The notes beneath the pieces were generated by a model. The model made no database searches. It worked only from the letters and a program-made list of their open reading frames with translations, and had not been told where the DNA came from. The translations under genes were made by a program, and so were the position numbers. Of a DNA stretch of 64,000 nucleotides, positions 7,714-58,738 are shown piece by piece. The stretch lies in assembly GCA_028826165.1 (NCBI GenBank), contig JAPDFW010000113.1, positions 1 through 64,000 on the forward strand, in the 5' to 3' direction. Positions within the stretch are counted from its first letter, which is position 1. Each line of letters opens with the position of its first letter. The stretch is from Anaeramoeba ignava BMAN. Lineage: Eukaryota > Protista > Anaeramoebae.

Positions 7714-7778
7714 TCTTTTTATTAATTCAAAAAAAAAATGAAAAAATGAAAAATGAAAAATGAAAAATGAAAAATGGG

Positions 7779-8760
7779 AATAGATTTAATTTAATATTTA
7801 ATTTATAAATTAATTTAAAAATATAATTTAATATTTAATTTTATTATTAAAATAATAATTTAATGTTTTAGATTTAAATATTTTATTATTTAAATATTTA
7901 ACATAAAAATATAAAAAATAAGAATAGATTTAATTTATTATTTAATTTATAAATTATTTAAAAATATAATTTAATATTTAATTTTATGTTTAAAATAATA
8001 ATTTAATGTTTTAGATTTAAATATTTTATTATTTAAATATTTAACATATAAATATAAAAAATGAAAATAGATTTAATTTAATATTTAATTTATAAATTAA
8101 TTTAAAAATATAATTTAATATTTAATTTTATTATTAAAATAATAATTTATTGTTTTTAGATTTAAATATTTTATTATTTAAATATTTAACATAAAAATAT
8201 AAAAATAAGAATAGATTTAATTTAATATTTAATTTATAAATTAATTTAAAAATATAATTTAATATTTAATTTTATGTTTAAAATAATAATTTATTGTTTT
8301 AGATTTAAATATTTTATTATTTAAATATTTAACATATAAATATAAAAATAAAAATAAGAATAGATTTAATTTAATATTTAATTTATAAATTAATTTAAAA
8401 ATATAATTTAATATTTAATTCAATTATTAAAATAATAATTTATTGTTTTAGATTTAAATATTTTATTATTTAAATATTTAACATAAAATATAAAAAATAA
8501 GAATAGATTTAATTTAATATTTAATTTATAAATTAATTTAAAAATATAATTTAATATTTAATTTTATGTTTAAAATAATAATTTAATGTTTTAGATTTAA
8601 ATATTTTATTATTTAAATATTTAAACATATAAAATATAAAAATGAGAATAGATTTAATTTAATATTTAATTTATAAATTAATTTAAAAATATAATTTAAT
8701 ATTTAATTTTATTATTAAAATAATAATTTATTGTTTTAGATTTAAATATTTTATTATTTA
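7779..8760. repeat. ~144-bp tandem repeat, about 7 copies, intergenic
   Basis: AATAGATTTAATTT recurs at about 7779, 7923, 8066, 8210, 8359, 8502 and 8647. Confidence 0.9.
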
Positions 8761-9066
8761 AAAATATTTTCAATTTATTTCTTTATTAAATAATTTTTTA
8801 ATAATAAATTATAATTGATTTGTTTCTTATTTTATATTTTATAAAATATTTTACAATTAATAATAATTAATTTCTATTTTCAATTTTTATATATTTTTGA
8901 TTTTTGATTTTTTTTCAATTTAATCTTCTTTTTAATAATATTTTTAAATTAAAATTAAATTGTTTAAAATTGGATTTGTTTCTTATTTATTGATTTGAAG
9001 AATTTAAATTGATTGAAAGTAAATGAAAATTGAATTAAATTTTGAAAAAAAAATTAAAAAAAGTTT

Positions 9067-12000
9067 TTAAATGAAATAAGTCTCAAGTTCATCAACAACC
9101 CATTTATTATAAGAACCAGCTAAATAACTTTTAGATTCATTTGTTGCTTCTTGAATTCCATTAGGTAGATTATAACTAGTACCAAAATTTGAATGACCAG
9201 GTTGTAAATTAGAAGATAATTTGAAATCATAATCTATTTTAATAAAAATAATTAATTTTAATAATAATTAATAATAATTTAATTTAAAATTAATTTTATT
9301 TTAAATTTAAATAATAATATTATTTATTATATTAATATTTTGGATTATTTATTAATTTAATTTTAATTATAATAAAATATTTGAAAAAAAGTGGAATAAA
9401 TAATTTAATAAAGATAAATAATTAATTTTAATAATAATTAATAATAATTTAATTTAAAATTAATTTTATTTTAAATTGAAATAATAATATTATTTATTAT
9501 ATTAATATTTTGGATTATTTATTAATTTAATTTTAATTATAATAATAAATATTTATTAAATATAAATTATTTACTATCTATTTTAATAAATATAAATAAT
9601 TAATTTTAATAATAATTAATAATAATTTAATTTAAAATTAATTTTATTTTAAATTGAAATAATAATATTATTTATTATATTAATATTTTGTATTATTTAT
9701 TAATTTAATTTTAATTATAATAATAAATATTTATTAAATATAAATTATTTACAAGCTATTTTAATAAAGATAAATAATTAATTTTAATAATAATTAGTAA
9801 TAATTTAATTTAAAATTAATTTTATTTTTAAATTGAAATAATAATATTATTTATTATATTAATATTTTGGATTATTTATTAATTTAATTTTAATTATAAT
9901 AAAATATTTGAAAAAGTGGAATAAATAATTTAATAAAGATAAATAATTAATTTTAATAATAATTAATAATAATTTAATTTAAAATTAATTTTATTTTTAA
10001 ATTGAAATAATAATATTATTTATTATATTAATATTTTGGATTATTTATTAATTTAATTTTAATTATAATAATAAATATTTATTAAATATAAATTATTTAC
10101 TATCTATTTTAATAAAGATAAATAATTAATTTTAATAATAATTAATAATAATTTAATTTAAAATTAATTTTATTTTTAAATTGAAATAATAATATTATTT
10201 ATTATATTAATATTTTGGATTATTTATTAATTTAATTTTAATTATAATAATAAATATTTATTAAATATAAATTATTTACAATCTATTTTAATAAAGATAA
10301 ATAATTAATTTTAATAATAATTTAATAATAATTTAATTTAAAATTAATTTTATTTTAAATTGAAATAATAATATTATTTATTATATTAATATTTTGGATT
10401 ATTTATTAATTTAATTTTAATTATAATAAAATATTTGAAAAAGTGGAATAAATAATTTAATAAAGATAAATAATTAATTTTAATAATAATTAATAATAAT
10501 TTAATTTAAAATTAATTTTATTTTAAATTGAAATAATATTATTATTTATTATATTAATATTTTGGATTATTTATTAATTTAATTTTAATTATAATAATAA
10601 ATATTTATTAAATATAAATTATTTACTCTCTATTTTAATAAAGATAAATAATTAATTTTAATAATAATTAATAATAATTTAATTTAAAATTAATTTTATT
10701 TTAAATTGAAATAATAATATTATTTATTATATTAATATTTTGGATTATTTATTAATTTAAATTATAATAATAAATATTTATTAAATATAAATTATTTACC
10801 AACTATTTTAATAAAGATAAATAATTAATTTTAATAATAATTAATAATAATTTAATTTAAAATTAATTTTATTTTAAATTGAAATAATAATATTATTTAT
10901 TATATTAATATTTTGGATTATTTATTAATTTAATTTTAATTATAATAATAAATATTTATTAAATATAAATTATTTACAAACTATTTTAATAAAGATAAAT
11001 AATTAATTTTAATAATAATTAATAATAATTTAATTTAAAATTAATTTTATTTTAAATTAAAATAATAATATTATTTATTATATTAATATTTTTGGATTAT
11101 TTATTAATTTAATTTTAATTATAATAATAAATATTTATTAAATATAAATTATTTACTAACTATTTTAATAAAGATAAATAATTAATTTTAATAATAATTA
11201 ATAATAATTTAATTTAAAATTAATTTTATTTTAAATTGAAATAATAATATTATTTATTATATTAATATTTTGGATTATTTATTAATTTAATTTTAATTAT
11301 AATAATAAATATTTATTAAATATAATTTATTTACTCCTATTTTAATAAAAATAAATAATTAATTTTAATAATAATTAATAATAATTTAAATTTAAAATTA
11401 ATTTTAAATTGAAATAATAATATTATTTATTATATTGATATTTTGGATTATTTATTAATTTAATTTTAATTATAATAATAAATATTTATTAAATATAAAT
11501 TATTTACTCTCTATTTTAATAAATATAAATAATTAATTTTAATAATAATTAATAATAATTTAATTTAAAATTAATTTTATTTTAAATTGAAATAATAATA
11601 TTATTTATTATATTGATATTTTAGATTATTTATTAATTTAATTTTAATTATAATAATAAATATTTATTAAATATAAATTATTTACTCTCTATTTTAATAA
11701 ATATAAATAATTAATTTTAATAATAATTAATAATAATTTAATTTAAAATTAATTTTATTTTAAATTAAAATAATAATATTATTTATTATATTAATATTTT
11801 GGATTATTTATTAATTTAATTTTAATTATAATAATAAATATTTATTAAATATAAATTATTTACTCTCTATTTTAATAAATATAAATAATTAATTTTAATA
11901 ATAATTAATAATAATTTAATTTAAAATTAATTTTATTTTAAATTAAAATAATAATATTATTTATTATATTAATATTTTGGATTATTTATTAATTTAATTT

Positions 12001-13689
12001 TAATTATAATAATAAATATTTATTAAATATAAATTATTTACTATCTATTTTAATAAATATAAATAATTAATTTTAATAATAATTAATAATAATTTAATTT
12101 AAAATTTAATTTTATTTTAAATTGAAATAATAATATTATTTATTATATTAATATTTTGGATTATTTATTAATTTAATTTTAATTATAATAATAAATATTT
12201 ATTAAATAAAAATATGATTTATATTTACATCCAAAAACTGGACCATAATTTAAATCAGAAAAAATTGCATTTCCTTCTTCTCCTTGTTTAATTGTAAACT
12301 TTTCTGGTTTTCTATCTCCTTTATCATTTCTTAATGAAAAAATAAATGCATTTGAATCATTAATGTTTCCTGTATTTCCATTAAATCCAACTTGAGTAAA
12401 TCCTCCAAAAATAAAATTATCTTTTGTTTTGATAATAACTAATGTTTTTCCTTTTCCATCAACTTTTTTATGCCAATTTTGAGAATTAAATCCATCTTTT
12501 TTTACTGAAAATCCTTTTTTCATTTTATAAAAAAAATCATTATCATTTATCCATTCTTGTAATTTCTTAGCATATTCAATATCTGTAATAATTTCTGATT
12601 TGAAAAAAACACCTAATTTCTTTTTCAATTCAAGTTTCTTTTGATATTTTGTGAATAATTTATCAAACATTGGTTTCATTTTCTCATTTTCATTTTCATT
12701 TTTCAATTTCTCTTCCAATTCCATTTTCATTTTCTCGTTTGAAATTTTCAAAAATTCAACTTCTTTTTTCAATTTATCTTCAACTTCTTGTTTAAATTTC
12801 TCTTCAATTTGAATTTTCGTTTCTTGATTTTCTTTTTCCTTATCTTGAATAACTTTGTTTTGAAGATCAATTAAAAAATAATTTGGAAGAAAAATTTCAA
12901 ATTGTTTTAATTTATCAAAATCTTGTTTTGAAATTGAATCTTTATCAAATAATGAAAAAAAAGAATGAAATAATCTTTTCTTTGCATTCATTTTGTGTTT
13001 ATATTTCCTTAATTTTAATGATTTAATTCTTTTTTCAATCCAATTATTTAAAAATTGAAAAAAATCAAATTGAAAAATTTCTTTCTTTTCTTGTTTAAAT
13101 TGAATAAATTTGATAATTTCTTCTTTAGTTAAATTGAATAAATTCTCATTATTCTGAATTTGGGAAAAATTTTGATTTATTAATTCAAAACATTTTATTT
13201 CAATTTCATTTGATTTTAAATTTCGATTTTGGAATAAAAATTGGAAAAATTTGAATAATTAATTGAATTTGAAATTTTTTTTTGAATAATTTCTTTCAAT
13301 AAATTTAATTTAAAATAAATTGAAATTTCTAATAATTGGATAAGATTTTCTTGATTCTCAAAAGAAATATTTCCATAATAAATATAACTCAAAATTGATT
13401 CCATTTCTTTTTTATTAAATTGATTTAAAGAAATAGAAAGAGATTCTTGCCTTAATGATTCATTAAAAAAAGGAGATCTTGAAGATAAAATTGATTTATG
13501 AACTTTAATTTCAAAATGATTTGATTTATTCTCAACAAAAATTGAAAAATCTTTAAATGAATTTCCATTTAAAAGGTTTGAATAATCTTTAATTAAATTT
13601 TTTGTTACTTTTTTTTCTAAATTTTTCATTTCATTTTCATTTTGATTTTGATTTGCATTTTCAATTTGGTTGTTATTATTATTATCCAT
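9067..13689 (-). CDS. BTB/POZ + coiled coil + TLDc protein; TLDc C-terminus interrupted by an intron/microexon array
   Basis: BTB: FKDFSIFV..KVHKSILSSRSPFF. An apparent homopolymer frameshift near 13245 joins the two listed ORFs. TLDc: DGFNSQNWHKKVDGKGKTLVIIKT..IFGGFT..AFIFSL..YGPVFG. Donor at 12228. The final exon 9233-9067 encodes YDFKLSSNLQPGHSNFGTSYNLP..YLAGSYNKWVVDELETYFI*. Confidence 0.88.
9234..12228 (-). repeat. Tandem array, ~178-bp period: ~175-nt GT...AG intron units separated by variable 3-nt microexons
   Basis: 13 junctions read TAAAATAG|NNN|GTAAAT on the minus strand (one has only 2 nt), plus three units with no splice junction. The array starts at the real exon donor and ends at the real acceptor. 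Confidence 0.85.
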
Positions 13690-14074
13690 TTTGTTTTTTG
13701 TGTTTTTTGTTTTTGTTTTTGTTTTTGTTTTCAAAAAGGAAAAATGAAAAAAATTTAAAAAAAATAAATAAAAAATTTTGAAAATAAATAAAAATATAAA
13801 AATGAGAATAAATTTAAATTAATAATTAATTTAATTTTCTTTTTAATTTATTATTTTAAATTAATTTATTAATAAATTATTATTATTTTTTATTAATTTT
13901 TTATTATTAAAAAAAGGAAAATTATTTTAATTTAATTTTTAATTTAATTTTTTTTTGGAATTTAAAAATTATTAATAAATTTAAATTTTAAAACAAATTT
14001 TCAAATTAATATTAATTCAATTTAATTCAAAAAGATAAAATTTTAATTTCAAAAATCAATTTTCAAAATATTTT

Positions 14075-14300
14075 TAAATAATAAAATATTTAAATCTAAA
14101 ACAATAAATTATTATTTTAAACATAAAATTAAATATTAAATTATATTTTTAAATTAATTTATAAATTAAATATTAAATTAAATCTATTCTTATTTTTTAT
14201 ATTTATATGTTAAATATTTAAATAATAAAATATTTAAATCTAAAACATTAAATTATTATTTTAATAATAAAATTAAATATTAAATTATATTTTTTTAAAT
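14075..14300. repeat. About 1.5 copies of the ~144-bp repeat, inverted relative to 7779-8760, between the divergent BTB-TLDc genes
   Basis: AAATATTTAAATCTAAAACA and ATTAAATCTATTCTT are reverse complements of the 7779-8760 unit. Confidence 0.85.
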
Positions 14301-14465
14301 TGAATTTATAAAAATTTTTAAATATGTTGAATATTTAAAACTTATTTTAAATTTTTATTATTTTTTTTAAATATTAAATTATTTTCAAATTAATTTTAAA
14401 TTTTTAAATTAAATTTTCATTTTTCATTTTTCATTTTTCATTTCTTTTTTCAAATTTTTAATAAA

Positions 14466-17400
14466 ATGGAAACTTATTCAAATTTAGAAAAACTTTCAAA
14501 TGATTTAAAAAATTTATTTCAAAATCAAAATGAAAATGAAAAAGAAGAAGAAAGTTATTTTGATTTTGAAATAATTTGTGAACAAAACAAAACTTCATTT
14601 AAAACTCATAAATCAATTCTTTCTTCAAGAAGTCAATATTTTAAATCTCTTTTCAATTCAAAAATGAAAGAATATCAAGAAAATAAAATGATTCTAAAAG
14701 ATGTTTCAAGTTCAATTCTATCTTCAATTTTAAATTATTTTTATTCAGGAAAAATTGAAATTAATTTAGAAAATGCTGTTGAAATTTTATTTTTTTCATC
14801 AAAATATTTAATTGATGAATTAATTGAAATTTCTTTAAAGTTTATCAAAAAGAATTTCCAATTTGAAACTGTTGTTGATGTTCTTAAATTATCTGAACCA
14901 ATGAACTTAAATCAATTATTGAATTCTTCTTATAAATTTATTTCAAAAAATTTTGAAGAATTTATCAAAACTCCTTTTTTTCTTGAACTTGAAGAAAATC
15001 ATTTAAATTCAATTTTATCAAATGATTATATTCCAATAAATGAATTTAAAATTTTCCAATCAATAATCAAATGGGGAAAACATAAATCAAATATTAATCA
15101 AGAAAAAGAAAATCAAAAACTTGAAAAAGAAGAAAAAGAAAAATTACAAAATCAAATTTCAAATATTATTGATAAAATCAGATTTATTGATTTCACAAAC
15201 CAAGAACTTGAAGATATTTTGAAAGAAGATATAATTCCAAATCAAATTTCACAAAAATTAATTCAATTTCAAAAAATTCAAAATGATAAAGAAAAATTAA
15301 ATGAATTAAATGAATTCATTCAAAAAGAAAATCAAAATTCATTCATTTTTAAATCAAGATTTCTATCAGATTCAGAAATTATTCAAGATAAAGAATATGT
15401 TAAGAAATTACAAGAATGGATAAATGATAATGATTTTTTTTATAAAATGAAAAAAGGATATTCAGCAAAAAAAGATGGATTTGATTGCAAAAATTGGCAT
15501 AAAAAAGTTGATAATAAAGGAAAAACATTAATTATTATCAAAACAAAAGATAATTTTATTTTTGGAGGATTTACTCAAGTTGGATGGACAAATGATAAAT
15601 CAAATTGGAGTGAAAAAAATAGAAGATATAATCATGGATATATTTCAGATTCAAATGCATTTATTTTTTCATTAAGAAATGATAAAGGAGATAGAAATCC
15701 AGAAAAATTTACAATTAAAAAAGGAGAAGAAAAATATGCAATTTTTTATGATTTAAATTATGGTCCAAGTTTTGGATGTAAATATAAATATTTTATTATT
15801 ATAATTAAAATTAATTTAATAAATAATCCAAAATATTAATATAATAAATAATATTATTATTTAAATTTAAAATAAAATTAATTTTAAATTTAATTATTAT
15901 TAATTATTATTAAAGTTAATTATTTATCTTTATTAAAATAGTTAGTAAATAATTTATATTTAATAAATATTTATTATTATAATTAAAATTAAATTAATAA
16001 ATAACTTCAAAATATTAATATAATAAATAATATTATTATTTCAATTTAAAATAAAATAAATTTTAAATTAAATTATTATTAATTATTTTTCATAAATTAT
16101 TTGTTGATAAAATAGATGGTAATTTAATTTATATTTTTTAAATATTTATTATTATAATTTAAAATTAAATTAATAAATAATCTAAAATATTAAATAATAA
16201 ATTTAATGAGAAAATTATTATTATTTGAAAAATGAAATTAAAAAATAATATAAAAATTAAAATAATAAAATTAATTATTATTTAAAATTAAATTATTAAT
16301 TATTATTAAAAATTAATTATTTATCTTTATTAAAATAAATAAATAATTTATATTTAATAAATATTTATTATAATTAAAATTAAATAATAAATAATCCAAA
16401 ATATTAATATAATAAATAATATTATTATTTCAATTTAAAATAAAAATTAATTTTAAAATTAAATTATTAATTATTATTAAAATTAAATTAATTTTTATTA
16501 AAATAGTTTAAAAATAATTTTATATTTATTATTATAATTAAAAAATTAAATTAATAAATAATCCAAAATATTAATATAATAAATAATATTATTATTTCAA
16601 TTTAAAATAAAATTAATTTTAAATTAAATATTTTTAAATTATTAATATTAATTATTTATCTTTATTAAAATAGTTCGTAAATAATTTATATTTTTAAATA
16701 TTTATTATAATTAAAATTAAATTAATAAATAATTTAAATCTAAAACAATAAATTATTTCAATTTTAAAATAAAATTAATTTTAAATTAAATTATTAAATT
16801 AATTTATAAATTAAATATTAAATTAAATTATTTTTATTAAAATAGTTTTAAATAATTTATATATTTAATAAATAATTATTTAAAATTAAAATTTATTAAT
16901 AAAAATCCAAAAAATTAATAAATAAATTTAGTTATTTCAATTTAAAAATAAAATTAAAAAAAAAAATTATTATTAATTATTATTAAAATTAATTATTTAT
17001 CTTTATTAAAATAGTTTTGTAAATAATTTATATTTTAATAAATATTCAATTATTATAATTAAAATTAAATTAATAAATAATCCAAAATAATAAATAATAT
17101 TATTATTTTTAAAATAAAATTAATTTTTAAATTAAATTATTATTAATTATTATTAAATTAAATTTATCTTTATTAAAATAGAAAATAAAATTATTTTAAT
17201 AAATATTTATTATTATAATTAAAATTAAATTAATAAACTAAAATATTAATATAATAAATAATATTATTTTTCAATTTAAAATAAAATTAATTTTTAAATT
17301 AAATTATTAAAATATTATTAAAATTGAATTAATTATTTTTATTAAATTAATTTATATATTTAATAAAAAATTTATTATAAAATTTAAAATAAATTAATAA

Positions 17401-18205
17401 ATAATCCAAAATGAAAATATTGTAAATGTAATATTAATTTATTTAAAATAAAAATGAATTTTAAATAAATTATTGAATTAAAATTCTTATAAATTTATTT
17501 CAAAAATTTTGAAGAATTTATCAAAACTCCTTATTTTTATTGAACTTAAAAGAAAATCATTTAAATTCAATTTTATCAAATGATTATATTCCAATAAATG
17601 AATTTAAAATTTTCCAATCAATAATAAAATGGGGAAAAAATTAAATCAAATATTAATTAGCTAGTAAATAATTTATATTAAAAAATAAATTATTAAAATT
17701 AAATTAAAATAATAAATTTCAAAAATATTATTAATAAAATAATATTATTATTTAAATTTTAAACATATTAATATCTTTGAAGATATAATTTATAAATAAA
17801 TATTTATTATTAAAATTAATTCAATTTCAAAAATTCAAAAATAAATAAAAGAAAATTAATTTTAAATTAAATTATTCAAAATTAAAAAATTCATTCATTT
17901 TTAAAAAAGAATGTAAATAAGATTTAATAAATTATTCATTATAAAAAATATGTTAAAATAAATAACAAAAATATTAATACAATAAATAATTTAAAATAAA
18001 ATTAATTTTAAATTTAAAAGAGATGGATTTTAAAATTAATTATTTATCTTTATTAAAATATTTAAAGGAAAAACATTGTTATTATAAAAAACAAAAGATA
18101 ATTTTGGTTTTTGGATAATTTACCTCAAATTAAATATGGACAAATGAAAAATTTAAATGAGAGAATAAATAGAAATGATGAACTTGGAGACTTATTTCAT
18201 TTAAA
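14466..18205 (+). CDS. BTB-BACK + TLDc protein; 3' part contains a second intron/microexon array and a garbled final exon
   Basis: BTB: YFDFEIIC..FKTHKSILSSRSQYFKSLF. BACK: NEFKIFQSIIKW. TLDc runs to YGPSFG, with donor GT at 15778. A remnant of the final exon (GATGAACTTGGAGACTTATTTCATTTAA, cf. DELETYFI*) is at about 18176-18205. Confidence 0.78.
15778..18100 (+). repeat. Second copy of the ~178-bp intron/microexon array, degraded or poorly assembled
   Basis: Reverse complement of the 9234-12228 unit. Intact junctions: AG|TTA|GT (15942), AG|ATG|GT (16116), AG|TTC|GT (16674), AG|TTTT|GT (17015), AG|CTA|GT (17661). Confidence 0.7.
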
Positions 18206-18479
18206 AACTTTTTATTTTTCAAAATTTAATTCAATTTTGATAAATCAATTTAAATTCTTCAAATCAAATAAAAAGAAAAGAAAAGAAATGCAATTTAATT
18301 TAATTTAAAAAATTATGGTAAAAGAAGATTAAGATGAAAAATGAAAATAATTTATTATTAAAATTTAAAATAAAATTAAATTTTAAATGAAAAATGTTTT
18401 ATAAAATATAAAATAAGAAACAAATTATAATTTTTATTAAAAATTATTTAATAAAGAAATAAATTGAAAATATTTTTAA

Positions 18480-19375
18480 ATAATAAAATATTTAAATCTA
18501 AAACAATAAAATTCATTATTTTAATAATAAAAATTAAATATAAATTAAATATTTTTTAAATTAATTTATAAATTAAAATTAAATTAAATGGTTCTTTTTT
18601 TTAAATATTTATATGTTAAATATTAAATTAAATAATAAAATATTTAAATTTAAAAACAATAAATTATTTTAATTTTTTAAAATTAAATTCATTTTTTAAA
18701 TTTAATTAAATATTAAATTAAATCTATTTATTTTTTATTTCAAATTTAATAAATAAAAATATTTAAATCTAAAAACAATAAATTATTATTTTAATAATTG
18801 AGTTAAAATTAAAATTATATTAAAAAGAAATTTATAAATTTAAATAAAATTAAAATTCTTATTTTTATAATGTTAAAATAATTAAATAATAAAAATTTAA
18901 ATTAAAACAATAAAATTATTTTTTATAAAATATAAAATATTAAATTATATTTTTAAATAAATTTATAAATTAAATATTAAATTTAAATATATTTTCATTT
19001 TTATAAGAAAAATGTTAAATATTAAATTAAATAATAAAATATTTAAATCTAAAACAATAAATTATTATTTTAATAATTGAATTAAATATTAAATTATATT
19101 TATAAATTGATTTATAAATTAAATATTAAATTAAATCTATTTTTCATTTTTATATTTATATGTTTAATTTTTAAATAATAAAATATTTAAATCTAAAACA
19201 ATAAATTATTATTTTAAACATAAAATTAAATATTAAATTATATTTTTAAATTGATTTATAAATTAAATATTAAATTAAATCTATTTTCATTTTTTATATT
19301 TATATGTTAAATATTTAAATAATAAAATATTTAAATCTAAAACAATAAATTATTATTTTAATATTAAAATTAAAA
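18480..19375. repeat. ~144-bp tandem repeat, inverted counterpart of 7779-8760
   Basis: Repeated AAAATATTTAAATCTAAAACAATAAATT and ATTAAATCTATT. Confidence 0.85.
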
Positions 19376-19461
19376 TAAAAATCTTAAATTATCCTTTTCC
19401 TTTTTCTCCTTTTTAAATTTCTTTATTGATTTTAATTTTAATTTTAATTTTAATTTTAATT

Positions 19462-21216
19462 TTAATTTTTAAATTTGTTAATTAATAAATCAAATAAATT
19501 TGGATTTGTTTGATTTAATTGAAAATAATCAATTCCAATTTGAATTTCATTAATGATTTCTTGTGTAATTTGAATTCCATCTTTAATTTGATTTGAATAA
19601 ATCCAATATTCAAATATTTGAAATGATTTATTACTTAATTCACTATAATCTGTAACTTTATTAGATTTATCTTCAGTTACAGATAAAAACATTCCTCGAT
19701 ATAATTCACTTCTCATTATTAATATTAATTTTGGAAATTCATATTGTTTTTCTTTTCTTTCAATTATAAAATCTTTTTCATTTTCATTTTCATTTAAATA
19801 AATTCTTTTCATTGTTTCTTCAATTTTTTCATTTGAATTTATAATTTCTTTAATTTCTGAATATAATTTTGGATTTATTTTGGAATTGTTTGAATAAATC
19901 ATTTCAAATATTTGATTTGATTCTTTAATTGATTTTTTTGAAATAATTTCTTGAAGTTTTTCAATTTCATTTTCATTTTGATTTAATCTATATTTCAATA
20001 TTAATTTATGAGCTTCAATTATTTCTCCATTTTCTGTTTTAAATGAAATATCACAAAATTCTTTTCTTCTAAATAATTTGATTAAATCATCTTCAAGATT
20101 GGAAAGGAAAGGAGAATAATAAAGGAATGAGTTATCAAATCCACAAAGAACATGATAATTAGAAATATTTTCATTAAATCTTAATTCAGGAAGTTCAATT
20201 TGAATTGGAATTAATTGATATTTCGCTGTTTTTTCAGTTCCTAATTGGCCATATTCATTATTTCCAAATACAATCATTTTTGAATTAGAAGTTAAAATCA
20301 AACTCTGTTCAAAACCACAAGAAAAATCAACAATGTAATCATCATTTTCAAATAAAGATGATTTAATTTCAGTAAATTCATAAGTATCTTCATTTTTGCC
20401 AAGTCCATTATTTCGATGATAACCACATGAATAAAGTTTTCTTTTTTCATATTCATCTTCAACCAACATTATTGAATGAGAATTTCCACATTGAATATCA
20501 ATTATTTTGCCTTTTGGAATATTTTGGATTTTCATTAATTTTTGGGTTTTGATTTCTCTTCTATTTGATTCTCCTAATCCAAGTTGACCGTGAATATTCC
20601 ATCCGCATACAAATAATTCTTGATTTGAATTGAAAAGAAAAACATGATAAGAAATAATTCCTGTAAATATTTTAGAAACATTTTTCATCATTAAAATTGG
20701 TTTTTCTGTTTCTTTAAGTGTTCTAAAATCAAAACCAAGTTGACTATTATAATTTGAACCAATTCCATAAACATTTTGATTTGAAGTTAATAAATAAATT
20801 GATTGAGCAGCACAAGCAATATCTTCAATTATTCTATCATTTTTATCTTCAATTAATGATGAAATATTGATAAATTCTTTTGTTTTCTCTAAATTAATAT
20901 TATCTCCTTTGGCAAATGCATTTCCTTCTATTGTTAAAATAGCTTCATTATTAAAACCAACAGTTACTTTTTGAATATTTTCAATTTGGATTTTTTGAGG
21001 ATTTGGATTTGAATAGTTGAAATATTCTATTGCTTTTCCATTTTCAAAAAGCAAAATTGTTGCATAATCTGTTGCTGAAATTTGTTTAATTTGTTTTTCA
21101 TTTTCATTTTCATTTTCATTTTCAAATTTAAATTGAATTGGTTTTGTAATTTTATATGGTCCATTTTTGGAAAAGTTTGAATTTCTATTTTTACCAAAAA
21201 ATATAATTTCATTCAT
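19462..21216 (-). CDS. RCC1-repeat beta-propeller + BTB protein, intronless
   Basis: RCC1 motifs (VYGIGSNYNSQLG, CGWNIHGQLGLG, IQCGNSHS, FGNNEYGQLG) and a C-terminal double BTB-like region (FCDISF..AHKLIL, RSELYRGMF). Confidence 0.9.
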   Translation of the reverse strand: MNEIIFFGKNRNSNFSKNGPYKITKPIQFKFENENENENEKQIKQISATDYATILLFENGKAIEYFNYSNPNPQKIQIENIQKVTVGFNNEAILTIEGNAFAKGDNINLEKTKEFINISSLIEDKNDRIIEDIACAAQSIYLLTSNQNVYGIGSNYNSQLGFDFRTLKETEKPILMMKNVSKIFTGIISYHVFLFNSNQELFVCGWNIHGQLGLGESNRREIKTQKLMKIQNIPKGKIIDIQCGNSHSIMLVEDEYEKRKLYSCGYHRNNGLGKNEDTYEFTEIKSSLFENDDYIVDFSCGFEQSLILTSNSKMIVFGNNEYGQLGTEKTAKYQLIPIQIELPELRFNENISNYHVLCGFDNSFLYYSPFLSNLEDDLIKLFRRKEFCDISFKTENGEIIEAHKLILKYRLNQNENEIEKLQEIISKKSIKESNQIFEMIYSNNSKINPKLYSEIKEIINSNEKIEETMKRIYLNENENEKDFIIERKEKQYEFPKLILIMRSELYRGMFLSVTEDKSNKVTDYSELSNKSFQIFEYWIYSNQIKDGIQITQEIINEIQIGIDYFQLNQTNPNLFDLLINKFKN

Positions 21217-21257
21217 TTTTAAAAAAGAAAAAAAATGAAAAAAATGATTTTGGATTT

Positions 21258-22400
21258 TTAATTTTTATTCCCTAAAAACTTTTTTTGAATAATTGAAGAA
21301 CCAAATTCATCATATTCTTTTTTCAAAACAAAATATTTTTCAAAACTAGAAAGAGAAGCTAAAATAGATCCACCAATCCAAGAAGTATATTTTCTTTCAG
21401 GAGGAGAAATAACTTTAACTTTCATATCAAGAGGAGCTAAATATAAAATTTCTTTTTGAATTCTATTATTAATTCCTTGAAATAATGAAGAACCACCTGC
21501 TAAAACAATATTTCTGTAAAAATATTTTCTGATTTCACTATCAGTTTTTAAAATTGAATCAAAAATCATTTGATGAATTCCTTTTTGTTGAATTCCAATT
21601 AAAGAGGGATTAAATAAAACTTCAGGACATCTAAATCTTTCATTTCCAATTGTGATACTACTTCCATCAGGTAATTCATATTGTTTTTCAATATCAGAAA
21701 ATTGATTTGAAATATCCATTTCTTGATCAAAATCCTCGGCAATATAACAAAGTTTTTCTTTAATATCGCGAACAATTTCTTTTTCCCAAGATGTTGTGAA
21801 TTCATATCCTCTTTCAGATAAAATTTTTGTTAAATATTCAGTTAAATCTTTTCCACCCAAATTAATTTTCATAATAGAATCAGATAAAACAAACCAATCC
21901 AAAATCGGAACAATAATACAAACACCATCTCCAATATCAACAACAATTCCATTTTTTCTTCCTGAACAATAAAGTGATAAAACTGATTGATTCTGAAGAG
22001 AAAAAGCAGGAATATTAAATTTTTCAAACATGATTTGGATCATTTTCTCTCGGCTTTCTTTTGGATTGAATGGAGATTCAGTTAATAAAACAGGATGTTC
22101 TTCAGGATTTACTCTTAATTCATTATAAAAAATATGATGCCAAATTTTTTCCATTTCTTCAAAATTTTTTATGATTCCATTTTCTATTGGATAAGTGAAA
22201 ATTGGTGTTACTCTTCTTGACAATGCTTCATCACCAACCCAATATTCTTTTTGACCCATTCCTATCATAATTCCTCGATGTCTTGGTCTTCCAGTTACTG
22301 TTGGGAAAACTGCTCTTGGTGCATCATCTCCTGCAAATCCTGTTTTCATCATTTGAGATCCTTGATCAATAACAACTTTTTCAAATCCATTTAAATTCAT
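21258..22400 (-). CDS. Divergent actin or actin-like protein, intronless
   Basis: [89 protein letters not shown]. Confidence 0.95.
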
Positions 22401-22489
22401 TTTAAATTATAAATTTTATTTAAATTTTATTTAAATTGAGAAAAAAAATGAAAAAAAATGAATTTTCATTATTAATTTTCATTTTTATT

Positions 22490-24840
22490 TTAATTTTCAT
22501 TATTAAATTGCTTAATTAATAAATCAAATAAATTTGGATTTGATTCATTTAATTGAAAATAATCAATTCCTTGTTCAATTTCATTAATTAATTCTTTTGT
22601 AATTTTAATTCCTTCTTTAATTTGATTTGAATAAATCCAATATTCAAATATTTCAAAAGCTTCATCACTTAATTCACTATAATCATTAACTTGATTAGAT
22701 TTATCTTCAGTTACAGATAAAAACATTCCTCGATATAATTCACTTCTCATTATTAATATTAATTTAGGGAATTTAATTAATTTTTCGTTTCTTTTAATAA
22801 TAAAATCTTTCGTTTCTTCTGAATAATAAATTCTTTTCATTGTTTCAGTTATATTTTCATACATATCAAATTCTCTCTGAATTTCTGTTTTTAATGATGA
22901 AAAAAAATTGGTTTTTGATGAATAAATAATTTCAAAAATTTCATTTGCTTCTTTCATTGTTTTTTTAGAAATGATTTTCTGAAGTTTTTCCATTTGATTT
23001 TGTTCAGTTCCTATTCGGAAATTGAGAATTAATTTATGCGCTTGAATCACTTCTCCATTTATTGTTTTAAATGAAATATCACAAAATTCTTTTCTTCTAA
23101 ATAATTTGATTAAATCATCTTCAAGATTTGAAAAGAAAGAATAATAAAGAAATGAATTAGAAAATCCACAATAAACATGATAATTGGAAATATCATCATT
23201 GAAAGATAGTTTAGGAAGTTCAATTTGAATTGGAGTTGATTGAATCAATGAATTTTCAATTCCTAATTCGCCAGAAAAATTGTTTCCAAAACCAATAAGT
23301 TTTTCATTTAGAGTTAAAATCAAAGTGTGTTTATCGCCAACAGAAAAATCAAGAATATTATCATTTTCAAATAAAGATGATTTAATTTCAGTAAATTTTT
23401 TGGTATTTTGTCGGTCTTTTTTTCCAATTCCATTGTAATTATAATCTCCACATGAATAAAGTTTTCTTTTTCCATCTTCATCTTCAATCAACATTATTGA
23501 ATGCATATAACCGCATTGAATATCAATTATTTTACCTTTTGGAATATTTCCGATTTGGGTTAATTTTTGGATTTGAGATTTTGTTTTCAATTCTCCTAAA
23601 CCAAGTTGATCACATGAATTGTTTCCACAAGCAAATAATTCTTGATTTGAATTCAAAACAAAAACAGAAAGAGAACAATTTCCTGAAAAGATTTTCGAAA
23701 CACTTCTCATCATCAAAACTGGAGTATCTGCTTTATTTGGGGAATCAAAACCAAGTTGACCAAAATGATTTGAACCAATTCCATAAACATTTCTTTTTGA
23801 AGTTAATAAATAAATTGAACCGTATCCACAAACAATATCTTCAATTATTCTATCATTTGTATTTTCAATTAACTCACAAATATTAATAAATTCATTTGGA
23901 TTATTTGAGTTAATATCTTTTCCTTTGGCAAATATATTTCCTTCAAAAGTTAAAACAGCTTCAATTCTTTGACTACAAATACAAACTTTTTTGATGTTTG
24001 GAATTTTGATTTTTTGAGGATTTTGATTTGAATTTTCTTTTAAATTTTGTTTTGAGTTTTCTTTTAAATATTGAATTGCTTTTCCATTTTTAAAAAGGAA
24101 AATTGTTGAAAAAAAGCTTGATGAAATTTGTTTAATTTGATTTTGATTTTCAAATTTAATTTGAATTGGTTTTTTAATTGAAATTGGATAAATTTGAAGG
24201 AGAGAAGAAGGAAAAGTATTTGAACCAAAAAACCAAATATCATTATTCGATTTAAATTGATTTTTTTTAATTGAAATTAAATTTAAATTTGAATTTGAAT
24301 TTGATTTTGATTTTAAATTTGATTTTGAATTTGATTTTAAATTTGATTTTGAATTTAATTTTGAATTTGAATTTGAATTTGAATTTGAATTTGATTTTGA
24401 ATTTGATTTTGAATTTGAATTTGAATTTGAATTTGAATTTGATTTTGAATTTGAATTTGATTTTGAATTTTGAATTTGATTTTGATTTTGAATTTGATTT
24501 TGAATTTGATTTTGAATTTGAATTTGAATTTGATTTTGAATTTGAATTTAAATTTGATTTTGAATTTGAATTTAAATTTGAATTTGAATTTGAATTTGAA
24601 TTTAATTTTGAATTTGATTTTGATTTTGATTTTGATTTTGAATTTGAATTTGAATTTAAATTTGATTTTGATTTTGAATTTGAATTTGATTTTGAATTTG
24701 AATTTGAATTTGAATTTGATTTTGAATTTGAATTTGATTTTGAATTTGAATTTGAATTTGATTTTGAATTTAATTTTGAATTTGAATTTGAATTTGATTT
24801 TGATTTTGATTTTGAATTTGAATTTAAATTTTGAATTCAT
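22490..24840 (-). CDS. RCC1-repeat + BTB protein (paralogue of 19462-21216), probably with an N-terminal Asn/Ser/Lys repeat
   Basis: ORF 22490-23716 is closely similar to its neighbour. Homology continues upstream (DIWFFGSN..KKPIQIKFEN..QIKQIS) across an apparent indel near 23720. The likely ATG at 24840 follows TTTTTCA motifs; the start is uncertain. Confidence 0.75.
24270..24835. repeat. Hexamer repeat (TTTGAA/TTTGAT)n, probably coding (NS/KS)n on the minus strand
   Basis: Directly visible. It lies between the candidate ATG and the RCC1 domain with no obvious GT-AG boundaries. Confidence 0.8.
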
Positions 24841-56323: not shown

Positions 56324-58738
56324 ATGAATAACTTTAATCAATTTTACAATTCTCAAAATTACTCTCCTTTTTTAACAACAATTCCAAGAACAGATCCTCA
56401 ATTTGAAAAAATAATATTTGTTGCCGGAAAACATTTTTTAAAATATTTTGATGGAATAAAAAAAAATTTTGTTCAAAATAATCCACAACAAGATGTAAAT
56501 GCCACAAAAAAGACATGAATTTAAAAAGAAAATTTTATCATTTTTCATTTTCATTTTTATTTTTCATTTTTCATTATTTTTTTTTTGATAGAATCAAAAT
56601 GTTGAGAAAGAAAGTTTTGTTATTTATCAAAGAAAAAGAGAATCACAATCACTTCAAGATATAAAATATAGAATAGTTTCTTTTTCTTCAATAAAACAAG
56701 TCAATTTTAATTTAACTCCTGGATTTCGTTATCAAAAAACACAAAAAGAAGAAGTTGTTCTTAGTTTGAATGAAAATGGAAATTTGTTTCCAACTTTTTA
56801 TTTTCTTGAAAAAAATAAACTTGATGAACTTTTGACAAAATTAGAAGAAATTAAAAAAGATTTAGAACTAGATTTCCAAATTTTAAATCAAAATTTAAAT
56901 CCAAATCCAAATCAAAGTCAAATTTTAAATCAAAGTCAAAATTTAAATCCAAATCAATTTTTAAGTCCAAATAAAATTATGAATCCAAATCCAAATCCAA
57001 ATCAAAGTCAAATTTTAAATCAAAGTCAAAATTTAAACCAAAATCAATTTTTAAGTCCAAATAAAATTATGAATCCAAATCAAAATTTAAATCAAAACCA
57101 AATTTTAAATCCAAATCCAAATCCAAATCAAAATCAAAGTCAAATTTTAAATCAAACCCAACTTGAAAACCAAATTTTAAATCCAAATCCAAATCCAAAT
57201 CAAAGTCAAATTTTAAATCAAAATTTAAACCAAAATCAATTTTTAAGTCCAAATAAAATTATGAATCCAAATCAAAATCAAAGTCAAAATTTAAATCAAA
57301 CCCAACTTGAAAATCAAATTTTGAATCCAAATCCAAATCCAAATCCAAATCAAAATCAAAGTCAAAATTTAAATCAAAACCAAAATCAAAGTCAAAATTT
57401 AAATCAAAGTCAAAATCAAAGTCAAAACCAAAATCAAAATCAAAATCAAAGTCAAAATCAAAGTCAAAATTTAAATCAAAGCCAAAATCAAAATTTAAAT
57501 CAAAGTCAAAATCAAAGTCAAAATTTAAATCAAAGCCAAAATCAAAATTTAAATCAAAATCAAAATGAAAATCAAATTTTAATTCCAAGAAATATCCAAA
57601 CCAATAAAAGCCAAAATTTAAATCCAAATCAATTTTTAAGTCCAAATAAAATTATGAATCCAAATCCAAATCCAAATCAAAGTCAATTTCCAAATCAATT
57701 TCCAAATCAAATGATGAATCCAAATCAATTTCCAAATCCAAATCAATTTCCAAATCAAAATCAATTTCCAAATCAAAATCAATTTCCAAATCAAAATCAA
57801 TTTCCAAATCAAAATCAATTTCCAAATCAAAATCAATTTCCAAATCAAAATCAATTTCCAAATCAAAATCAATTTCCAAATCAAATGATGAATCAAAATC
57901 AATTTCCAAATCAAAATCAATTTCTAAATCAATTTCCAAATCAATTTCCAAATCAAATGATGAATCCAAATCAATTTCCAAATCAATTTCCAAATCAAAA
58001 TCAATTTCCAAATCAATTTCCAAATCAAATGATGAATCAAAATCAAAAACAATTTCCAAATCAAAATCAATTTCAAAATCAAAATCAAATGATGAATCAA
58101 AATCAATTTCCAAATCAATTTCCAAATCAAATTCCAAATCAAATGATGAATCCAAATCAATTTCCAAATCAAAATCAATTTCCAAATCAAAATCAACTTC
58201 AAAATCAATTTCAAAATCAATTTCAAAATCCAAATCAATTTCAAAATCAATTTCAAAATCAATTTCAAAATCAAAATCAATTTCAAAATCAATTTCCAAA
58301 TCAAATTTTAAATCAAAATCAAAACCAAAATCAAAACTCAAAATCAAAATCAAAATCAAAATCAAAATCAAAATCAAATTGAAAATCAAATTGAAATTTT
58401 AAATCAAAGTCTACTTGAAAATCAAATTTTAAATCAAATTACAAAGTAAATTAAATTTATTAAATTATTTTAAATTCAAAACAAACACTAATTTAATTAA
58501 CAATTAAATTTTTTTTTTTAAATTTTAAAGTCAAAATTCTTTAAGTCAATCTCAACAATTATTAACTCCAAAATTTTTGAAAAAAGAAAGTCAAGAAATT
58601 TTATTAAAATCTTCAATCAATCAAACTCAAAAACAAGATAAGAAAATAACAAAAGAACAAATTTCAAAAGCTTTAATAAATCTTTCTAATAATGAAAACT
58701 TTCTTGAATTTTTACTAAATGAAATTAAAAAAGATTAA
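56324..58738 (+). CDS. Divergent DCP1-like decapping activator (EVH1-like N-terminus, Q/N/P repeat linker, C-terminal trimerisation-like helix)
   Basis: IPRTDPQFEKIIFVAGKHFLKYFD..VEKESFVIYQR resembles DCP1 (LQRHDPYINRI..ALYTF..VEGTLFVY.R). ITKEQISKALINLSNNENFLEFL resembles LTKLQLQEALLYLIQNDDNFL. Confidence 0.6.

Follow-up and report, generated by a model that had tools for sequence, protein, structure and literature searches.

The window analysed here is a stretch of 64,000 nucleotides (nt), contig JAPDFW010000113.1 positions 1 to 64,000, from the Anaeramoeba ignava BMAN assembly, which is nanopore-based and short-read polished (PMC11550330). Its minus strand carries a gene for a BTB-coiled-coil-TLDc protein, in which exon 1 (13689-12229) and the last exon (9233-9067) are separated by an array of near-identical repeats (12228-9234). 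An earlier note on this DNA had described the array as a series of tandem introns separated by variable 3-nt microexons. Exon 1 encodes the BTB domain (Pfam BTB, E = 1e-14), a coiled stretch and two thirds of the TLDc domain (TLD, E = 1e-17), and it stops one base past the GPVFG motif into the next codon, that is, in phase 1. The C-terminal third of TLDc and the stop codon are supplied by the last exon. The TLDc profile (PF07534) scored 65 bits with a cut-off of 24.5. The BACK domain was not matched in this gene (9067-13689) and was matched in its divergently oriented neighbour. The encoded protein opens with a polar low-complexity stretch followed by BTB, and a signal peptide was not evident (no predictor was run). 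A 1-nt frameshift was found in exon 1 at a T run (13249-13245). Because the same run was affected in 4 of 15 paralogues, the frameshift is probably a nanopore homopolymer error.

The array consists of 17 near-identical units of ~178 nt on the minus strand (Tandem Repeats Finder: period 178, 17 copies, 94% matches) and contains 14 candidate introns, three of them of double length. Its limits are the donor at 12228 and the acceptor at 9234, where the earlier note had placed them; NCBI model P0076 (KAJ5068785, M0811_12206) uses the same outer splice sites and joins the outer exons directly. The first donor (12215-12228, minus strand) is of a type unlike the internal donors, and this first-type donor start was found in 19 of 20 fetched genes. 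While 18 of these genes end the array with a longer final acceptor, the gene at 9067-13689 instead uses an acceptor of the internal type. In the window (9233-9229) and at the last-exon start of another gene with an internal-type final acceptor (L050), extra codons are present; speculatively, these look as if spacers had been fused after loss of the last intron.

Thirteen junctions in the array read acceptor, spacer, donor, and 12 of the 13 spacers are 3 nt long. All of them sit at the coordinates, and with the letters, that had been reported earlier. In transcript order on the minus strand they are ATA (12042-12044), AGA (11864-11866), AGA (11686-11688), AGA (11508-11510), GA (11335-11336), TTA (11157-11159), TTT (10978-10980), TTG (10800-10802), AGA (10627-10629), ATT (10280-10282), ATA (10101-10103), CTT (9753-9755) and ATA (9575-9577). 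The 2-nt fifth spacer would break the frame unless it is a consensus error; it is probably a homopolymer-collapsed GGA, a spacer common in the paralogues. Three units (near 10455, 9925 and 9400) lack a junction and are one variant copied three times, which gives the double-length introns. At most 39 nt of spacer occur in the ~1.6 kb coding sequence of the gene. A scan of the window for ordinary introns returned two only, too few for a splice consensus. The idea of one codon per exon had to be corrected, since the site is in phase 1, where a triplet supplies the end of one codon and the start of the following one.

The pieces insert after GPxFG, in the loop that leads to the next D-hydrophobic motif. 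This is the most length-variable loop of the TLDc domain, with 1 to 12 residues among annotated paralogues, mostly 1-9. In an AlphaFold model (predicted local distance difference test score 87) the insertion point is the turn between two short strands, 113-114 and 119-120. A Foldseek search matched the TLDc fold to NCOA7, OXR2 and mEAK7 (E about 1e-7, TM about 0.67). Ncoa7 has a glycine-rich bend between two strands at residues 896-903, and TLDc acts as a protein-interaction domain in Ncoa7-type proteins (PMC8608904). By motif position, the array site would correspond to the Ncoa7 bend.

The arrangement is widespread in the genome. Over the whole assembly (42,843,398 bases, 147 contigs), the exact 28-nt junction with a 3-nt spacer was found 228 times, and the control gave 0, a result well outside chance; these copies are related by duplication, and the counts overstate the number of independent events. 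Among 239 junctions with a spacer of 0-12 nt, these 228 (95%) are exactly 3 nt. A looser acceptor-spacer-donor pattern gave 884 matches with 3 nt, 37 with 4 nt and 13 with 5 nt (reversed control, 30). Of the 228 exact junctions, 128 were not placed to a gene. The expected co-location with TLDc genes was observed for every array with readable flanks among 20 fetched regions: all 20 fetched genes with an array-type intron carry it at one TLDc codon, and at least 18 paralogues share the array at this phase-1 position. The TLDc domain, here joined to BTB, exists in several hundred copies (556 candidates). As a separate observation, A. ignava-like proteins (P0156; C104:866780-868927) have several tandem TLDc domains, with six matched stretches in P0156. 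All close protein matches came from A. ignava. The array junction was unmatched in the metagenome contigs, and for A. flamelloides no close homologue came up (the species itself was not examined).

Eighteen arrays hold 3-18 spacers each, and no two share the same spacer string. One gene (L040) has one spacer, and in two others (L047 and L050) just one intron from this family is present, which points to the starting state of the arrays. Array size among close paralogues ranges from 0 to 18 spacers. In most genes, a fixed difference sets the first donor and the final acceptor apart from the internal splice sites. Identity among units is 98.0% within arrays and 97.7% between them, also where these lie on separate contigs, as against 87% for the end of exon 1.

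The variation within arrays is concentrated in the spacers. Difference rates were 0.031 at intron positions and 0.63, 0.31 and 0.65 at the three spacer positions, which thus differ 10-20 times more often. The splice sites were evaluated by an unbiased tiling of 175 units in which a junction was not required, and the internal acceptor G and the internal donor G were each intact in 168 of them. In the same units, four C positions of the intron body were off consensus in 17-41%. The near identity of the units was borne out. The spacer is the most variable site of the unit, though not the sole strongly variable one that the earlier note had taken it to be. In a cluster of four tandem TLDc paralogues (C1:1057920-1073184) the introns are short and irregular, and 3-nt spacers of the same kind are kept; these arrays likely show the system at an earlier stage or after erosion. 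The full sequence of a further gene (L046) likewise shows short irregular introns with 3-nt spacers kept.

The base composition of the spacers fits that of coding sequence. The G+C content at the three spacer positions was 22, 11 and 46%, compared with 20, 7 and 32% at codon positions 2, 3 and 1 of the neighbouring exon. Base use thus matches codon positions 2, 3 and 1, as phase 1 predicts. This pattern may partly be inherited from the split codon (the last exons begin with NT and exon 1 ends with T, A or G), an origin that leaves the diversification of spacer positions 1 and 3 unexplained. Read over all ordered spacer pairs, the pieces would contribute Y, D, N, V, I, F and S for the most part, and 3% of the outcomes would be stops.

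A second array family was found with another acceptor context, a spacing of 70-110 nt, shorter introns and a phase-0 codon pattern. Examples of its arrays lie at C1:409306-413040, C57:593647-597712, C87:271574-276831 and C137:610583-622440, and the run on C57 has at least 33 spacers. Only 9 of 340 spacers in this family end in G or C. None of the 67 spacers that start with T is a stop codon, although 11 of them are TAT and the triplets AAA, GAA and CAA are frequent. This is the phase-0 version of the same codon signature. An ankyrin profile search of the genome placed none of its best 150 matches at the second-family arrays.

The concentrated variation, the intact splice sites, the codon signature and the second family agree with each other, and for this reason the spacers are read as coding microexons. 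They are flanked by canonical AG and GT and have a frame-preserving length (3 nt in 228 of 239), and very probably they are spliced exons. An alternative is that each array is one long satellite or selfishly amplified intron, whose spacers are breakpoint remnants or functionless landmarks of recursive splicing that never enter the mRNA. The NCBI models treat each array as a single intron, AT-rich satellites are frequent in the window, and identity between genes is higher for the introns (98%) than for the exon beside them (87%), which would be expected of a spreading repeat. This account leaves unexplained the 10-20 fold variation in exactly three bases and the exon-like G+C in DNA that is 96% A+T. 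It does not explain the phase-dependent codon signature in two unrelated families or the lack of stop codons in the second one either, and the 3-nt spacing survives in diverged arrays. It is considered improbable.

Still less credible, to the point of being almost negligible, is the possibility that the spacer differences are nanopore consensus errors in a collapsed repeat. The assembly is indeed nanopore-based (PMC11550330), and homopolymer slips are visible, including the frameshift in exon 1 and spacers of 2, 4 and 5 nt. Errors of this kind would not yield a codon-position bias, stop avoidance, array-specific sets or an exact 3-nt length in 95% of cases, although single spacers may still be miscalled. 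The anatomy of the arrays is a real and very unusual gene architecture.

The arrays also turn over at the DNA level. Adjacent spacers were identical in 31 cases compared with 22.5 after shuffling (P = 0.013), and the spacer sets are array-specific (118 vs 85 identical pairs, P = 0.002). Tandem duplication and the unequal crossover postulated earlier are thus visible in the DNA, where neighbours and array-mates share spacers above chance. This turnover was shown, and it holds under skipping or full inclusion of the spacers alike. It might be thought that the arrays are a silent archive, in which recombination between introns deletes or converts units per cell and each lineage expresses a different short set. 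Near-identical repeats are good substrates for recombination and array sizes vary widely, but an archive would have no need of the internal splice sites, all of which are preserved; this explanation appears very unlikely.

How the spacers are read out was assessed from their order and from the stops that they create. Any subset of 3-nt pieces keeps the frame, as the earlier note had stated, but the pieces are not freely combinable: 4 of the 12 in the BTB-TLDc gene (AGA) give TAG after a piece ending in T, exon 1 included, so that direct joining of the second spacer to exon 1 already yields TAG. If one spacer alone is included, a stop arises with 12 of 155 spacers overall and with 4 of the 12 in the BTB-TLDc gene. 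For most other arrays, stops are infrequent however the pieces combine, and 920 distinct open loop peptides are still possible from the array of the BTB-TLDc gene.

Variable inclusion of the spacers is somewhat favoured because full inclusion would exceed nearly all paralogue loops, the number of pieces in close relatives varies between 0 and 18, the outer splice sites form a distinct type and the all-skipped protein resembles the single-intron paralogues. Several results weigh against it. The twelve 3-nt pieces of the BTB-TLDc gene joined in order are stop-free, which fits full inclusion equally well or better, while 51% of their ordered subsets contain TAG, arising from the four AGA pieces. 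Avoidance of stops through spacer order was not significant across all arrays (2 vs 3.2, P = 0.31). Three protein searches and three cluster look-ups returned no transcript-derived protein of any array gene; one non-array paralogue has a EukProt entry. Among the sequencing runs searched, none was recorded as RNA, and one run of unstated kind contained 42% of the exon 1 words. All NCBI models that span an array skip every spacer. The descent of the spacer and junction copies by duplication, mentioned above, belongs to these points.

The main competitor of variable inclusion is constitutive splicing, in which all introns would be removed in turn, ~14 extra loop residues would be added here, and diversity would arise only by expansion, contraction and conversion at the DNA level between paralogues and alleles. 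Intron-by-intron removal is the usual default for introns of such size. The units have the ordinary intron size of this genome, in which the median is 102 nt (PMC11550330 Table S3A). Furthermore, 16 of 17 arrays show no stop where neighbouring pieces are joined, and within the BTB-TLDc gene each AGA follows a piece ending in A or G. Random spacer pairs are also 97% stop-free, however, so an open order says little, and one array (L033) has stops in order. Loops of 15-20 residues would exceed those of the annotated paralogues (mostly 1-9), and a spacer-less gene with a one-residue loop exists (L047), which makes the skipped form a plausible protein. Constitutive splicing is therefore regarded as a serious but rather unlikely alternative.

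Overall, the best explanation is probably a cassette of 3-nt coding microexons that lie between cloned spliceosomal introns and are variably included. Such an array would originate by tandem amplification of one intron together with three bases of the codon it splits, and each internal acceptor and donor would be functional. A 3-nt exon could not be defined from both sides at once, which would lead to stepwise joining or to skipping, and transcripts would carry none to several pieces. As a result, the β-hairpin loop after GPxFG in TLDc would change in length and sequence, the added residues being mostly Y, D, N, V, I, F and S. The near-identical introns would undergo unequal crossover and gene conversion, by which arrays are reshuffled and resized within and between paralogues, under selection that maintains differences among the spacers. 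The system would probably serve to give the many BTB proteins of this large family, which resemble Cullin-3 adaptors, a variable surface for binding substrates. More tentatively, and with slightly less than even confidence, a genome-wide splicing system may be envisaged in which variable binding loops are assembled in steps of one codon's worth of bases. Its 3-nt exons would number several hundred, spread over repeat-spacer arrays of at least two unrelated families, and their combinatorial use would generate a large library of BTB adaptor specificities, possibly for defence or for the control of bacterial symbionts.

If the pieces are spliced, this would be the finest-grained exon cassette known to us, and it occurs in a metamonad. 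The spliceosome would then handle a dozen or more consecutive 3-nt exons, providing a natural test system for their recognition and skipping. The published annotation would lack several hundred exons, and arrays would account for many of the longest introns in it. If inclusion is combinatorial, the arrays would constitute a device by which a unicellular organism that hosts bacterial symbionts diversifies its receptors, with a logic like that of Dscam or the brown algal ROCO genes and a different build.

Besides the gene described, the window contains a divergently oriented BTB-BACK-TLDc paralogue on the plus strand. Its exon 1 (14466-15779) ends at the same phase-1 site and is followed by a degraded array (15780-18350) with a garbled tail of exon-1-like and last-exon-like sequence. 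The exon-1-like part shows 72% identity over ~1 kb, and the last exon is not intact; the tail possibly reflects poor consensus, decay or a consensus artefact of an inverted duplication. A 144-nt AT-rich repeat was found downstream of each TLDc gene and between them (7763-8762, 14069-14363 and 18400-19380), and it belongs to an inverted duplicated cassette together with both genes. Elsewhere in the window, two RCC1-like/BTB-like open reading frames surround an actin-like one (21258-22400) in the region 19462-23716, as judged from the translations by eye only, and the open reading frame at 56766-58382 carries long tandem peptide repeats rich in Q, N, P and F.

The intron note of the genome paper is silent on these arrays (PMC11550330). 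In agreement with the earlier note, which knew of no such system, a literature search found no paper on tandem near-identical introns separated by variable 3-nt exons. The diversification of proteins by exon arrays is itself known, whereas the architecture with cloned introns and 3-nt pieces was not found described. In arthropod Dscam1, tandem duplicated exon cassettes provide many binding specificities per gene. The logic would be alike, but Dscam1 exons are long, mutually exclusive and chosen via RNA docking sites, and in A. ignava single inclusion would produce a stop at 12 of 155 spacers. Brown algal proteins of the ROCO and the NB-ARC-TPR type, a large family proposed as immune receptors, have exons arrayed in tandem in the part presumed to bind ligands, and these exons are subject to shuffling, to diversifying selection and to alternative splicing (PMC3341825, PMC11378527). 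There the exon is a whole 72-nt repeat, while in A. ignava it is 3 nt, one codon's worth, and the repeated part is the intron.

Introners are near-identical intron families, and tandem duplication is a source of new introns (PMC3609843, PMC4974935). Introners are scattered in unrelated genes, whereas the A. ignava copies lie head-to-tail at one homologous codon (20 of 20 fetched genes) with variable exon pieces between them. An assignment to an introner family was rejected on account of this tandem arrangement at one homologous codon of TLDc in the fetched genes. With respect to the domain, NCOA7, OXR1, mEAK7 and TBC1D24 share the TLDc fold and are single-copy V-ATPase regulators with a conserved bend (PMC8608904). 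In A. ignava, by contrast, the TLDc domain is attached to a BTB domain, its copies number several hundred, and the bend is highly variable.

The micro-exon genes (MEGs) of Schistosoma also have very short exons in series, mostly of a length divisible by three, with sizes of 6-81 nt (mostly 15) and introns of 0.1-5 kb, and they encode small secreted proteins (PMC10526429). In MEGs, protein variation is raised by alternative splicing and gene duplication, and the arrays of A. ignava would act in a like manner. MEG products are small and secreted, whereas the array protein begins with a polar low-complexity stretch and BTB, with no evident signal peptide (as above, no predictor was run). The MEG exons form most of the protein, whereas the A. 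ignava pieces are uniformly 3 nt, amount to at most 39 nt of ~1.6 kb and affect one loop of a folded domain. Unlike MEG exons, they lie between near-identical tandem introns.

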